A stretch of DNA of 64,000 bases from Diplonema japonicum (lineage: Eukaryota > Protista > Euglenozoa: Diplonemea): positions 558,001 to 622,000 of the forward strand of contig OZ025650.1 of assembly GCA_964019335.1 (NCBI GenBank), written 5' to 3'. The stretch's first letter is position 1, and each line of letters opens with the position of its first letter. The translations under genes were made by a program, and so were the position numbers. Positions 55,649-62,022 of the stretch are shown here, piece after piece. Under the pieces are notes generated by a model, which did not search any database, was not told where the DNA came from, and saw only the letters and a program-made list of their open reading frames with translations.

Positions 55649-56215
<567 letters not shown>

Positions 56216-57467: not shown

Positions 57468-58073
57468 CCCTTGTATGACGAATAATATCTTTTCTTGCCA
57501 CACCCCGTCCCCTTTTTTTTCTTCGAATTTTTTTATCCCCCAAAAAAAATATTTTGATTTGGAAAGACGGGCCCCTTTTTTTTTCTTGCACCCAAGAAAA
57601 AAACTTTAAAAAAAAAAAATACTGTCCACCTAAACAAACGTAAATTGGCCAAAAAGGAAGCAAAGGAGGTGTTTACTAAGGTAAGCAATGCCGCTGCTAA
57701 GTTATCAAAAGCTTAAGCCGATTTCCTCAAGCAGCGCCCCCTGATGGTTCAAGTGTTTTGTATTCAAAGCAGAAACACTCGTTAATTTATGTGTTTATGA
57801 GTGTTGAGATTACTTTTTTTCTCAAGATGTCTACTTACGCTTTTTGTGTGGATGTTGTCAAAATATCCAGACAATTACCCCCCCCCCCCCCCCATTCTTT
57901 TTCGATGAATGTATCCTCCTGACCCTTCTCTTTGCTCTTTAAGTTATTGGTACATGGTTGGCTTCATTTAAGTGTGTGAGTTGTAAAAACCCGCTGCTTG
58001 TTCGGTAGTTCTGCTGGTCCAGACAAAGATTTGCATTCACACCATAGCAACGCCCAGCTAGAGGATACACAAC

Positions 58074-59687
58074 ATGACAACGTATCGGAAAGACGTGAAG
58101 AGCAGAACTGCTGGGAACACGCCCCTTGAAGAAGATAAGGTAGCATATGTGAAACGGTGGTTAAACGAGATGAGCTTTGTGGTGATTGATGGTGGAACGG
58201 GGACAGAGATAGAGAAGCTTGCGGGAACGGAGGCCATGAACTCGGAGGGGTGGAGCTGCAAGTGCAACCTCACCCACCCTGAAGTAGTTAAAAAGGTGCA
58301 CTTGAACTACCTGCAGGCAGGCGCTGATATCATCATTGCTAACACATATGCCACGAACCCCAACGTGATGCTTGCTGGTGGCAGCTTCACACCTAAAGAA
58401 CAGCGGCGCAGCACCATAGAAGGTGTACGCCTTGCTAAGGAGGCAGTTGGGGTGAACTCGGCAGGGGGCGGGCATATGAAGCCACTGGTGGCCGGTTCTT
58501 TGTCGTGCCATCCTCCGCTCATGCCGCCCAACGCTGAATTCGACAAAGGGATATGGCCCCCCCCTGACGTGGAGGAGAGGAACTGCACGCTTCATGCACA
58601 GCAACTAAAGGACAGCGGCGTCGACGTGATTTTCCTTGAAATGGTATGGGACTTGGAACACGGCAAGCGTGCCTTGCGTGCTGCTGTGTCCGTCGGGCTC
58701 CCTGTCTTTGCGGCGGTGTGCATCCCTCTACCGATGGAAGGCAAGCACACCATGGAAGCACTGCGCCGCCTGACCATCCCGGACGACGAAATCACTCTCG
58801 GAGGGTCCGGCAGCACTTCCGTCGTCGAAGCAGTGCAAGAGATGATGCGCTACCCCAACGTGGTGGGCATCAACGTGCACCACACACCGTTGCCTTTTGT
58901 AAAAACAGCGCTTGAAGCAGTTAGGAGGGCCGGCTGGAAAGGCTTCCTTGGTGTGTATCCTGACCACGGCACCTTCTGTAACCCACACTGGGTGACACAT
59001 GAGCTCGACAAGTCACAGTTCCTTCTTCACTGCGAAGAATGGGTAGAGAAGACAGGCTGCAAGGCCATTGGCGGGTGCTGTGGGGTCGGCCCAGATGTGA
59101 TCCAAGGCATTCATGGGCATAAAGCCACACTGATTGAGAAATACAAAAAATGGGAAAACACTTGCAACCCTCCACTTGCACCCCCGCTAGAACCACCACC
59201 TTCGCCTAAGAAACCAACGCCCGTTGCTGGAGCTCCAAAATGGGCTTTTGTGGTTTTTTTATTAGTGCTTTTTGTGTGGTTTGATCTACAGCGCGGGCCC
59301 AGCAATTGGAACAAAGTGAAAGTTACCACTGAGTGGTCCAAAGATTGTGGCGAAGAGTGGAGGGGTGTTTGGTTCTTATTAATGGACACCGACAATGATG
59401 GCACTGTTACACCCAACGAGTTCAACATGTTCATGTCCCGCAGGCCACACCTAAGGAGGCGAATCCTTCGCAACAGTAACCTCACCATGGACATGCTCCT
59501 TATGAAGCTTGACCCCTCCAACACAGGCGTTGTGACTCTCTCCAATTTTGCCAAATTGTGGCGATCTCCTATCGTAGGCCAGTTGGAAGACCCTTGTCCC
59601 CTTCCTAGGAGGGCGCAAAAGAAGCCTGTAAAGAAGGAATCTCCAGGCGGACCGCCGAGGAGGCGTGCAGTACGGAAGCCCAACTAG
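58074..59687 (+). CDS. Homocysteine S-methyltransferase-family domain fused to a Pro linker, a TM helix and two EF-hand-like loops
   Basis: IDGGTGTEIE, VHLNYLQAGADIIIANTY, IGGCCGVGP; WAFVVFLLVLFVWF; DTDNDGTVTPNEF, DPSNTGVVTLSNF. Confidence 0.8.
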   Translation: MTTYRKDVKSRTAGNTPLEEDKVAYVKRWLNEMSFVVIDGGTGTEIEKLAGTEAMNSEGWSCKCNLTHPEVVKKVHLNYLQAGADIIIANTYATNPNVMLAGGSFTPKEQRRSTIEGVRLAKEAVGVNSAGGGHMKPLVAGSLSCHPPLMPPNAEFDKGIWPPPDVEERNCTLHAQQLKDSGVDVIFLEMVWDLEHGKRALRAAVSVGLPVFAAVCIPLPMEGKHTMEALRRLTIPDDEITLGGSGSTSVVEAVQEMMRYPNVVGINVHHTPLPFVKTALEAVRRAGWKGFLGVYPDHGTFCNPHWVTHELDKSQFLLHCEEWVEKTGCKAIGGCCGVGPDVIQGIHGHKATLIEKYKKWENTCNPPLAPPLEPPPSPKKPTPVAGAPKWAFVVFLLVLFVWFDLQRGPSNWNKVKVTTEWSKDCGEEWRGVWFLLMDTDNDGTVTPNEFNMFMSRRPHLRRRILRNSNLTMDMLLMKLDPSNTGVVTLSNFAKLWRSPIVGQLEDPCPLPRRAQKKPVKKESPGGPPRRRAVRKPN

Positions 59688-59849
59688 TAAACAGTTCTCG
59701 CTCTGCTATCTTTTCTGCTTTTTTTTTAAGGTGCGGTTTGTGAAATCTAATTTGCATTTTGCACTGTCAATATATTCTTCTTTTTTTTCTCTCTTTTTGG
59801 TTATCTCCCCGTGTTTGCAACATTACACACTATATTTCACAGACACACA

Positions 59850-60347
59850 ATGGCGAGTCTCTTACTTGTGACAGCTGCTCTTGCAACCCAGCTGCAATCA
59901 GCAAAAGAAGCGGTGGTGGAATCTGGCGTGGAGTGGCAGATCTCCGATGGTGGGACTGTGGTAGGCTACTTCAAGGGTGTTGATGGGTTAAGCACTGAGC
60001 TTGAGGTGGTTGAGTACCAGGATGGCGACGGACTGTTCGCCCTGCGCAAGAGGCCAGGGAGGGCAAAGTACGGCGACGTCACTCTGAAGAGAGGTTATTT
60101 CCTCAGAGAGGGCATGCAGCAATGGTTGAACCAGGTAGTCGAAGCAGGTAAAAAGGGAGACGTCTCTGACTCATCATTTAAGCGCAAGATGAGGCTGACT
60201 CAAATGCACCACGGGGATCCCAAAGGGTCATGGGCTCTGTACGGATGCTGGCCCAAGCAGTGGAGAGTAAATGGCTTTGATGGAAAAAGCAACGACGTTT
60301 CCACAGAAGAGATCGTCTTCGTGGTGGAAGACATGCAGATTGCATGA
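59850..60347 (+). CDS. Phage tail tube protein, T4 gp19 / contractile injection system (Afp1/Pvc1-like) family, with an N-terminal hydrophobic leader
   Basis: F..VDGL.TE.EVVEYQDG...RKRPGRAKYGDVTLKRG...W...W.L.GCWP..W....DGKSNDV..EEIVFVVE. The Met at 59850 follows a pyrimidine tract and CAG. Confidence 0.88.
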   Translation: MASLLLVTAALATQLQSAKEAVVESGVEWQISDGGTVVGYFKGVDGLSTELEVVEYQDGDGLFALRKRPGRAKYGDVTLKRGYFLREGMQQWLNQVVEAGKKGDVSDSSFKRKMRLTQMHHGDPKGSWALYGCWPKQWRVNGFDGKSNDVSTEEIVFVVEDMQIA

Positions 60348-60883
60348 GGTGCACGCCCGCCTTTTGGCCCTGCTGATCTTGCGTATTAGCAGCTAGCTCG
60401 AAAGGTTGAAAAGGTGCTCTTGTGCCGTACACGATCCCTCTCTTTTTTATATTTTTTTTTTCTCGTTGTCCTTCTCACCCAGCAAGCGGAATGTGTCCAC
60501 AGGGTGTTATTATATAGTTTTGAACTCATCCACTTTCGTTCACTTTACTCTTCAGGATGACACAGTTTATATGACGTCTGTGCAAGTAGCAGCATGGGTG
60601 AAGGGCCACCCGTGGAGGGTGGAAGATGGTCTAGACCCTCCTCAAGTTAAGGAAGACGGCTGCACACAGGACAAGGCGGCAGAACAGATAGAAGAGACTG
60701 TCGATGAAGCTCAGGAACCAATGCTTGCAGAACCAGAAGAGATGCAAAAACAGGAATTAGTTGAAACTGAAAAACAGCATTCGGCAGCGGTCTGACTGTT
60801 ATTTACATAACTTTCAAATATGTTGAACGACTGCAATATCCTGTAGATCATTCCTGCTTAGCCATCACAGGTCACCAGGTCAC

Positions 60884-61939
60884 ATGAACGGTGCACTTTC
60901 GGGTGCCAACAAGAGGGTGCTCTCAGCTGGTGATGAAGATGAGATGACAGCAAAAAGAAGGAAGCCTGAGGCAGCAAGTGTAGAGCTGAGAGTGATGTGC
61001 TTCAACATCTTAGCGGACTGGGCAGCAGTAGACTACACCAACGAGCTGTACACATATGCTGCGAGGGAAGATCGACCGTGGGTGCTGAACTGGAAGCGAA
61101 GGTTTGAATGCATCAAAGATGAGATAAATAAATGGGCACCAGCAGTGCTAGCCGTACAGGAAGCGGATCCTGTGGAGGAGGTAGCAGACTTCTTGAAGAG
61201 CGAGAACTACCAAGTAGAGTACGTGACTAAGACAAAGCATACGAAGCATGACTCGGTGTTGCTAGCATGGCGTAGTAACCTACTCGATTTGAAAAGGGCA
61301 GAGCGTGTCTATATGAGTGAAGCACCCCCGAAATTGTCGAAGCCGCAGGTAGGACTCTTGCTTGAGTTCCAACTGAGAGGCACTGGCAGACGGCTGCTCG
61401 TCTCAACAACACATATCTATTTCGCTCCAAAAGCGGGCGATGTGAAGAAATACCAGATAGATGTTATGCTGCAGCGAGTGACAGCTTTTCTCAACGGCTG
61501 GAGTGTCGGGGAGCCTCTCCGAACGGGAGGACCCATCATGCCTCTAATGTCGGGTTTTAAAATGGTGCACAATAGGGAGCCTGTCTGGACCAACTCTCAT
61601 GCGACATTTCGCGACACCGTAGACTACATCTGGCTAGCGGGTCTAACTCCCGTGGCAGCACCGTGTCCTACACGAGAAATGCAGGAACGCATTGTGGGCA
61701 TCCCATCGCCAGACTTCGGCTCGGACCACGTTCCTATAGTGCTGGACGTGAAGGTAGATGTGACACCTGGCAGCAGTGCTATCTTCATGGGGGACTTCAA
61801 CATGACACCCCGCTCTGAGCTTTATAGATACATCAACACTGCACGCGCACCGGGGAAGAACCTAAAAGCGTGGGCTGCAATGTCATCGCAACGACGCCCA
61901 TTCCGAAATATGACATTGTTCCCCGGCCCTTTAGTTTAG
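60884..61939 (+). CDS. Endonuclease/exonuclease/phosphatase (Angel/CCR4/nocturnin-like) with rearranged motif order; may have an upstream exon at 60571-60790
   Basis: VMCFNILA, LNWKRR, LAVQEAD, TTHIYFAPKAGDVK..Q, TVDYIW, SDH, MGDFN. Confidence 0.85.
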   Translation: MNGALSGANKRVLSAGDEDEMTAKRRKPEAASVELRVMCFNILADWAAVDYTNELYTYAAREDRPWVLNWKRRFECIKDEINKWAPAVLAVQEADPVEEVADFLKSENYQVEYVTKTKHTKHDSVLLAWRSNLLDLKRAERVYMSEAPPKLSKPQVGLLLEFQLRGTGRRLLVSTTHIYFAPKAGDVKKYQIDVMLQRVTAFLNGWSVGEPLRTGGPIMPLMSGFKMVHNREPVWTNSHATFRDTVDYIWLAGLTPVAAPCPTREMQERIVGIPSPDFGSDHVPIVLDVKVDVTPGSSAIFMGDFNMTPRSELYRYINTARAPGKNLKAWAAMSSQRRPFRNMTLFPGPLV

Positions 61940-62022
61940 TTCCTCCTTTTTTAGACTTCAGTACCATCACATTACATTACAGGTTATCACTCACGGTCGG
62001 AACGTCCAAGTAAATACCTAAA

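Follow-up and report, generated by a model that had tools for sequence, protein, structure and literature searches.

A 64,000-nucleotide stretch of the Diplonema japonicum genome was analysed (the window; positions 558,001 to 622,000 of contig OZ025650.1, designated C3 in the 62.5 Mb, 132-contig assembly G000). On its forward strand, at positions 59850-60347, lies a gene for a tube protein of the T4 gp19 family, to which the inner tubes of extracellular contractile injection systems (eCIS) belong. The gene is a genuine nuclear gene of D. japonicum, and its mRNA is trans-spliced and polyadenylated. It was acquired horizontally from a Myxococcota-type bacterial source. It is likely that its leader-bearing product is secreted and forms sheath-independent rings or short stacks outside the cytosol, and that a second gp19-like gene, on contig C30, is an old duplicate of it.

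In outline, a bacterial gene for a main inner-tube protein (Cis1/Afp1/Pvc1-like), or for an exported stand-alone derivative of such a protein, entered the diplonemid genome. The leader, which is visible as a sequence feature, would direct the protein into the endoplasmic reticulum (ER) and the secretory pathway and would then be cleaved off. Conservation of the long hairpin and the C-terminus suggests that the mature protein may still form hexameric rings or short stacks. These would act without a sheath, either extracellularly or in the lumen of a vesicle, by analogy with leader-bearing, sheath-less gp19 proteins of bacteria.

A trans-spliced nuclear gene

The open reading frame (ORF) encodes 165 amino acids followed by a stop codon, and is complete, uninterrupted and without introns, as an earlier note made from the sequence alone had described. 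Its first ATG lies 39 nt into an open frame beginning at 59811. Contigs from four public runs were placed on positions 58000-61950 of the window. In three of these runs (X6, X11 and X12, labelled organism A, B and C respectively, from three studies) a single mRNA-sized tube contig begins exactly at 59842 and is preceded by 17-20 non-genomic nucleotides, TACAGTTTCTGTACTTTATT, representing the 3' end of the spliced leader. The G at 59842 is compatible both with the last base of the leader and with the acceptor. A 39-nt leader exon ending in this sequence is present in 161 copies in the genome. The trans-splice acceptor that the earlier note had predicted at 59842, and the pyrimidine tract expected ahead of it, were therefore borne out. 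Since the host spliced leader sits on the tube mRNA, transfer of the gene is beyond doubt. The features of the locus, all on the forward strand, are as follows.

59776 to 59809, + strand: pyrimidine-rich tract ahead of the trans-splice acceptor, read from the sequence.
59796, + strand: poly(A) site of the upstream gene, inside the pyrimidine tract; a contig of run X6 stops here and continues as a run of A.
59841 to 59842, + strand: AG trans-splice acceptor and spliced-leader junction, with the leader end directly before 59842 in X6, X11 and X12.
59843 to 59849, + strand: 5' untranslated region (UTR) of 7 nt between spliced leader and ATG, from the sequence and the RNA contigs.
59850 to 60347, + strand: coding sequence of the gp19/eCIS inner-tube family protein, from the ORF, profile matches and predicted fold.
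59850 to 59906, + strand: N-terminal hydrophobic leader, residues 1-19, from hydropathy, a (-3,-1) scan, the AlphaFold2 model and alignment to leaderless relatives.
59928 to 60335, + strand: predicted tube-fold domain, residues 27-162, from the region matched by PF06841 and Foldseek.
59973 to 60098, + strand: long β-hairpin segment, residues 42-83, the best-conserved part by consensus comparison, of low confidence in the monomer model.
60348 to 60501, + strand: 3' UTR of approximately 130-150 nt; the mRNA contig ends at 60479 in X6, 60495 in X11 and 60501 in X12.

Bacterial contamination or a chimeric assembly join, for which nothing beyond the bacterial affinity of the protein was found to speak, can be dismissed: it is effectively refuted by the host spliced leader on the mRNA in three runs, the GC content, third-position GC content (GC3) and codon usage of the ORF are within the host range, the locus is situated 618 kb into a large contig and is surrounded by eukaryotic genes, and all 241 of 241 sampled 31-mers of positions 58900-61200, including both intergenic junctions, were present in five runs from two studies (2020; 2023-24). 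In the fourth run (X13, organism D) both neighbouring genes were covered and the tube ORF was not; with a depth of about 4, and 10 of 30 bins covered, this run is too thin for the gene to be called absent.

Family and predicted fold

The protein matched PF06841 (Phage_T4_gp19) with 94.9 bits against a cut-off of 28.2, residues 27-162 aligning to positions 7-133 of the 134-position profile, and TIGR02241 with 78.8 bits against a cut-off of 62.4. All of the gp19-family motifs that had first drawn attention to the ORF are present. The narrower NCBIfam equivalog models scored 39 bits against a cut-off of 260 (CIS5_fam) and 14 bits against a cut-off of 220 (CIS1_fam); because both scores are far below cut-off, the protein can be assigned to neither CIS1 (tube) nor CIS5 (tube adaptor). 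The best solved relatives by sequence were the contractile injection system (CIS) tube proteins 9r9h_B, 7adz_1a and 7b5h_AN; by name these relatives include AlgoCIS (7adz_1a) and Anabaena All3324, followed by Pvc1, Pvc5 and Afp1.

An AlphaFold2 monomer model built on 30 relatives reached a mean predicted local distance difference test score (pLDDT) of 73.6 and a predicted template modelling score (pTM) of 0.66, with the hairpin poorly ordered in the monomer. Foldseek matched the model with a probability of 1.00 to Afp1 (6rao_A), Pvc1 (6j0b_a), Alg1 (7adz_1a), PlPVC1, the Streptomyces CIS tube and the Anabaena CIS tube, at template modelling (TM) scores of approximately 0.5-0.6. The model thus has the elements of the tube fold: a β-sandwich, the helix that flanks it and a long hairpin.

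The main inner tubes of eCIS (Afp1, Pvc1, Alg1 and All3324/Cis1) resemble the D. japonicum protein in family and predicted fold, and it is 50-57% identical to operon-encoded members from Myxococcota. The hairpin and the C-terminal strand are nearly unchanged relative to these tubes, whereas the N-terminal strand and the outer helix have been rewritten, with insertions of 1 residue in the hairpin and 4 residues after the helix. The D. japonicum gene also differs in being nuclear, trans-spliced and monocistronic, in having no partner genes and in encoding a hydrophobic leader. The tube superfamily fold is shared with the T6SS (type VI secretion system) protein Hcp, to which Foldseek gave matches at E = 1e-4 to 1e-3 (Hcp1 structures), but the D. 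japonicum protein has no sequence-level membership of that family (PF05638 unmatched). Hcp is a ring former that also occurs extracellularly and is able to serve as a carrier. Its export is by the T6SS itself and not by a signal peptide, and it needs a sheath and baseplate.

Comparison with the bacterial consensus gave the following distribution of identities and of retained, strongly conserved columns along the protein.

N-terminal strand, residues 20-41: 5 of 22 identical to the consensus, 3 of 13 strongly conserved columns kept.
Hairpin, residues 42-83: 34 of 41 identical to the consensus, 26 of 27 strongly conserved columns kept.
Helix and loop, residues 84-112: 3 of 25 identical to the consensus, 2 of 5 strongly conserved columns kept.
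C-terminus, residues 142-165: 20 of 24 identical to the consensus, 6 of 6 strongly conserved columns kept.

Taken together, the hairpin and C-terminus retained 32 of 33 conserved columns, compared with 9 of 25 elsewhere (Fisher p = 3e-7). At the level of the sequence, the divergence is a mosaic in which the β-hairpin and C-terminus have been kept and the N-terminal strand and helix rewritten. In published tube structures, the lumen and the contacts between rings are built by the hairpin, the inner sheet and the C-terminal strand, with the helix turned towards the sheath. By analogy, a conserved hairpin combined with a rewritten helix is what would be expected of a self-assembling tube protein that had lost its sheath.

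The hairpin motif also recurs in other proteins. Several short stretches 56-77% identical to query residues 50-86 were observed in giant proteins, some of them of RHS type, namely P0099 (5355 aa), P0110 (5053 aa), P0198 (1936 aa, with RHS repeats), P0122 and P0143, all of which lack the rest of the fold. These hairpin repeats could be mimics of the tube lumen or loading tags.

Bacterial origin and absence of partner genes

A search of a collection of 5.8 billion protein clusters, which includes EukProt, returned 98 matches, none of more than 57% identity. The best named matches were 'phage tail proteins' of 144 amino acids from Deltaproteobacteria and Myxococcota. When one genome per species was considered, the best 80 loci by tblastn were overwhelmingly from metagenome-assembled genomes (MAGs) of Myxococcota, with identities of up to 53%. 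One of these homologues (L005) lies within an operon of the order sheath, tube, x, sheath, tube, and another (L007) follows a sheath gene. Two maximum likelihood trees, computed from 144 usable columns, placed the diplonemid protein inside a bacterial clade on a terminal branch of 1.3-1.4 substitutions per site, compared with medians of 0.09 and 0.29. In both trees the protein itself falls in an unresolved backbone. The direction of transfer is clear, from bacterium to eukaryote, and the donor would have been a Myxococcota-type eCIS tube lineage, to which no finer assignment is given. The horizontal acquisition that the earlier note had proposed is thus supported by the phylogeny that it had called for.

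An origin from the endosymbionts of the host, which are Holosporales, was set aside, the best relatives being from Myxococcota and not from Holosporales. The title of a preprint, 'Absence of endosymbiotic gene transfer in symbiont-bearing diplonemids', was likewise weighed against such an origin. The host-like composition of the ORF says little about the age of the transfer, since GC3 among the bacterial relatives ranges from 0.46 to 0.89.

Six-frame searches of the whole 62.5 Mb genome with profile hidden Markov models (HMMs) revealed no candidate for the sheath (PF04984) and no match for gp25 (PF04965), VgrG/gpD (PF05954), baseplate J (PF04865) or PAAR (PF05488), while control genomes scored for the sheath and in each of the other families; the search works exon by exon, so that a very diverged or heavily split gene could escape it. 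The lack of other CIS genes previously remarked upon for the window accordingly extends, for these five marker families, to the entire genome. Nor is the tube gene embedded in a CIS operon, being flanked by genes for a methyltransferase/EF hand protein and an EEP enzyme. With sheath, baseplate and spike genes all missing from the genome, the tube protein cannot belong to a contractile machine. The description of the locus as part of a 'eukaryotic system built from CIS parts' was therefore overstated, since only tube-family genes are present.

A second gp19-like gene

The window gene is not the only gp19-like gene of D. japonicum, as the search of the whole genome for paralogues revealed. A second gene of the gp19 fold, intronless and encoding 185 amino acids, lies on the minus strand of C30 (G000:C30:142527-143084, corresponding to L085:1429-1986). 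It was located by protein search at C30:142599-142940, having been passed over by the Pfam search of the genome at E <= 0.001; its score against PF06841 is 24.8 bits, just below the cut-off. The C30 protein is 28-29% identical to the window protein (BLASTP E = 1e-8), which is its highest-identity match, and aligned to the tube profile with a probability of 93% in HHalign. It has a hairpin shorter by about 11 residues, a lysine-rich insertion before the last strand and a branch length of 5.4. Its N-terminus, MKIKCMLLFLACFACSEG, is a textbook signal peptide with n-, h- and c-regions. The AlphaFold2 model reached a pLDDT of 77.8, with 89 residues at 90 or above, and the top Foldseek matches were Alg1 and Pvc1, the alignment that guided the model having consisted of tube proteins. 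The predicted protein is identical to a transcriptome-derived entry of EukProt (EP01064_Diplonema_japonicum_P037854).

A tree in which the window and C30 proteins were held together had a higher likelihood than the free search (approximately unbiased test, p-AU 0.64). Judging from these comparisons, the C30 gene is probably an old duplicate of the window gene, produced by one acquisition followed by duplication. Both proteins have long branches, which attract one another, and their grouping is consistent with a single acquisition without being proof of it.

The leader and exported bacterial relatives

The extra leader that the earlier note had reported before the tube fold is present, and in hydrophobicity it equals the signal-peptide-like leaders found in bacterial homologues. 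Its core, MASLLLVTAALAT, is a stretch of 13 residues without charge, whose highest Kyte-Doolittle mean over 9 residues is 2.68, compared with 2.3-3.4 in the bacterial leaders, and a (-3,-1) scan indicated that the small residues A10/A12 and S17/A18 permit cleavage after A12 or A18. The leader is too short to span a membrane. Leaderless bacterial relatives start MP(S/T)RR, eight residues before the first β-strand, and the diplonemid protein is approximately 20 residues longer at its N-terminus. Translation of the leader is unavoidable: the spliced-leader junction lies 7 nt ahead of the first ATG, and no further in-frame ATG occurs until codon 90, followed by codon 102. By its composition the leader may be described as signal-peptide-like, and targeting to the ER is plausible.

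Leaders are not confined to the diplonemid protein. Seven of the first 98 matches have hydrophobic leaders, and an exhaustive HMMER scan of 1.84 billion representatives yielded 1611 matches, among the best 150 of which leaders were scored in the 121 proteins of single-domain size. Approximately 55 of these 121 nearest representatives (~45%; clusters of 50% identity) carry Sec, lipoprotein or Tat leaders, a handful being false calls in which the scoring window lay on the first strand. Lipobox leaders were found in P0113 and P0222 and a twin-arginine leader in P0147. Among the 17 leader-bearing rows of the tree, the distribution of the leader needs 10-12 gains or losses.

Genomic context was seen for two leader-bearing genes, both in named genomes. 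P0005, from a Nannocystaceae MAG (L002:9968-10462), is encoded by an orphan gene beside unrelated genes, and a full operon lies on another contig of the same genome. The second is a tube gene of an Akkermansiaceae MAG (L030:2537-3037), in whose 5.1 Mb genome no sheath match was found. This gene is followed by another gp19-like ORF (L030:3048-3815; 41 bits) with a hydrophobic N-terminus of its own and a C-terminal extension of about 100 amino acids, forming a pair of tube genes without a sheath.

The premise that prokaryotic members of the family are always cytosolic and leaderless did not hold, given that nearly half of the nearest representatives bear leaders and that at least two genes stand apart from any sheath gene. 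Exported, stand-alone tube proteins are a recurrent bacterial theme, and the leader-bearing gp19 proteins apparently constitute a large, undescribed class. As such proteins are common in bacteria, the leader is not a eukaryotic novelty. Leader-bearing, sheath-less bacterial gp19 proteins (P0005, the L030 pair and P0108 of Chloroflexota) match the D. japonicum protein in size, at 160-185 amino acids, and in their layout of a leader and a single tube domain. Their genes stand alone, away from sheath genes, as does that of D. japonicum. What sets them apart is that their leaders are of the classical Sec, lipoprotein or Tat kinds and possess basic n-regions, and that the trees place none of them as a close sister. 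The comparison explains the layout of the diplonemid protein, not its role.

Two origins of the leader can thus be envisaged, and the retargeting after acquisition that had been suggested is only one of them: the leader itself is there, but with bacterial leaders so common it might instead have been inherited from a donor that was already an exported, sheath-independent orphan like P0005. This is a real possibility, albeit less probable than not. Leader-bearing gp19 proteins are frequent near the query and leaders have arisen many times; P0005 is both an orphan and the match of highest identity (57%); the tblastn alignment to L002 runs through the leader, covering query residues 5-164; and a 12-row clade that holds the window protein also takes in P0005 and P0051, with a support of 88 in the Shimodaira-Hasegawa-like approximate likelihood ratio test (SH-aLRT). 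The careful tree, on the other hand, leaves the window protein on the backbone with no sister group, similarity between hydrophobic leaders is of low complexity and could be convergent, and the basic n-region of the bacterial leaders is missing from the diplonemid one.

Alternatively, the leader may not be a signal peptide at all, and the protein may form an Hcp-like ring that stays cytosolic or sits at the surface of a membrane, serving for instance as a chaperone or scaffold. The leader is indeed short and has no basic n-region, and AlphaFold2 drew residues 2-21 as one continuous, low-confidence helix detached from the fold. Such a cytosolic role is nonetheless unlikely when set against the canonical n-h-c signal peptide of the independent C30 paralogue, the position of the first ATG after the spliced leader, which forces the leader to be translated, and the many bacterial relatives that are exported. 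Secretion of the diplonemid protein remains the preferred interpretation.

Possible association with extrusomes

Membrane-bound tubular extrusomes occur in starvation-induced sessile and swimming stages of D. japonicum (PMC13598402, PMC5845003), and thick-walled tubular extrusomes have been listed among the apomorphies of Euglenozoa (PMC5845003). It has been considered whether the leader-bearing tube protein, perhaps together with its C30 paralogue, might be a structural subunit of these starvation-built organelles or of some other ejectile or prey-attack nanotube. Both gp19-like genes encode secretory-type leaders and the window gene has kept the stacking hairpin, which would suit such a role. 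The organelle, however, is a trait shared by euglenozoans, yet no orthologue of either gene was found beyond the close relatives of D. japonicum in the 5.8-billion-cluster collection; a distribution as narrow as this argues against a core role.

A gp19 tube is less than 10 nm wide. The extrusomes have been depicted as cylinders with cruciate centres in micrographs bearing 0.1 µm scale bars (PMC5845003), and in view of this difference in dimensions the tube protein could be at most a minor component. A core role in the extrusome is therefore unlikely, while the protein might have a lineage-specific accessory role; as an explanation of the gene, a structural subunit of extrusomes or a comparable nanotube has to be rated as improbable.

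Selection and the case against a function

An expressed but functionless passenger, that is, an old transfer drifting towards loss and transcribed merely as part of a polycistron, was considered slightly less probable still. Polycistronic transcription of the diplonemid and kinetoplastid type yields processed mRNA from nearly any sequence with a pyrimidine tract and an AG, and for this reason the mRNA alone is no proof of function. The alleles of X11 and X12, which are approximately 2% diverged, have 10 listed differences in the ORF, of which 4 are synonymous and 5 alter an amino acid (Y74F, V77I, L85S, V105F and V150A); one more difference in the contig falls outside this listing. The ratio of nonsynonymous to synonymous polymorphism (pN/pS) between strains is 0.43, which is not significantly below 1 (p = 0.16), a comparison of 10 differences being underpowered, and is 0.14 for the upstream methyltransferase gene. 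This indistinguishability from neutrality, the very long branch and the loss of 18 of 60 family-conserved columns would all fit a passenger.

Against this, the frame is still open after about 1.3 substitutions per site and remains intact in the X11 and X12 alleles. The lost columns cluster in two regions, leaving all but one of those in the hairpin and C-terminus untouched, and the five amino acid differences between strains are conservative or at sites variable in the family. In all three RNA runs the k-mer depth of the tube mRNA contig also exceeded that of its neighbours 3-6 fold (in X6, 838 compared with 290 and 176; the ratios in X11 and X12 were similar), although contig depth is a poor measure of expression and provides a hint only. 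The check on selective constraint that the earlier note had advised was accordingly answered in part: the clustering of conserved columns speaks for constraint, and the polymorphism ratio does not.

Several of these observations also weigh against a secreted, self-assembling tube protein as the product of the gene, namely the polymorphism ratio, the readiness with which polycistronic transcription produces mRNA and the narrow distribution of both genes. In addition, the leader lacks a basic n-region and has only about 13 hydrophobic residues, the roles ascribed to hairpin and helix rest on general knowledge of tube structures and hence on analogy, and the one-residue insertion in the hairpin together with the rewritten N-terminal strand could abolish stacking.

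Neighbouring genes and spliced-leader sites

On the same strand, the tube gene is flanked by genes for a MAPEG protein, for a homocysteine methyltransferase that carries an EF hand, for an EEP enzyme and for RPL7, and further neighbours in the window are equally eukaryotic (WASH complex subunits, a mitochondrial carrier and an MFS transporter). The co-oriented eukaryotic cluster noted previously was thus recovered, with MAPEG and RPL7 on the same strand and UBC13-like coding pieces in two frames, as expected of an intron. The latter lie at 55649-55983, the first piece ending '...RYHF', and fit a cis-intron.

Each of the immediate neighbours has its own spliced-leader site. The same loose spliced-leader end was observed at 58061 (upstream gene, ATG at 58074), at 60555 and at 60870 (downstream gene, ATG at 60884). 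The upstream gene (58074-59687) has an unusual architecture, in which a homocysteine S-methyltransferase domain is followed by a linker rich in proline, a segment of hydrophobic residues and an EF hand. From the acceptor at 60555 runs an RNA contig of approximately 345 nt (60555-60899), which crosses the 60870 acceptor into the start of the EEP gene and contains a 74-codon ORF from an ATG at 60572. This transcript is either a small gene in its own right or belongs to the EEP gene as a long, alternative 5' UTR.

The leader exon of D. japonicum differs by two mismatches from the leader that PMC3795323 lists as 'Euglenozoa 14'. Its copies (e.g. C3:788249-788287, and others on C24 and C9) are dispersed over many contigs, often a few kb from contig ends, and do not form one tandem array. 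The first base of the exon varies among A, T, C and G in many copies.

Significance

Cases in which a phage structural protein has turned into a working gene of a eukaryote are very rare, and we know of no description of a eukaryotic tail-tube gene. Literature searches on eukaryotic gp19, exported tube proteins and diplonemid phage-tail genes found nothing specific; the diplonemid genome note and a preprint on horizontal gene transfer make no mention of phage, and the preprint none of tail or tube. A lone tube gene with an export-type leader, accompanied by an old paralogue, represents a natural experiment on a tube protein without its sheath. The leader-bearing gp19 class of bacteria suggests that sheath-independent use of the tube fold outside the cytoplasm is recurrent, and it may now be encountered in a eukaryote also.

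More tentatively, D. japonicum may have domesticated the tube protein into a small family whose members, the window and C30 proteins, are secreted, assemble by themselves and without a sheath into rings or nanotubes, and are used in a structure located extracellularly or inside vesicles; taken to its extreme, this possibility would make the two proteins a lineage-specific part of the starvation-induced tubular extrusomes or of an apparatus for host or prey invasion. The link to the stage-specific tubular extrusomes is speculative but directly testable. Were such a domestication true, it would constitute the first eukaryotic structure built from a part of a contractile injection system.

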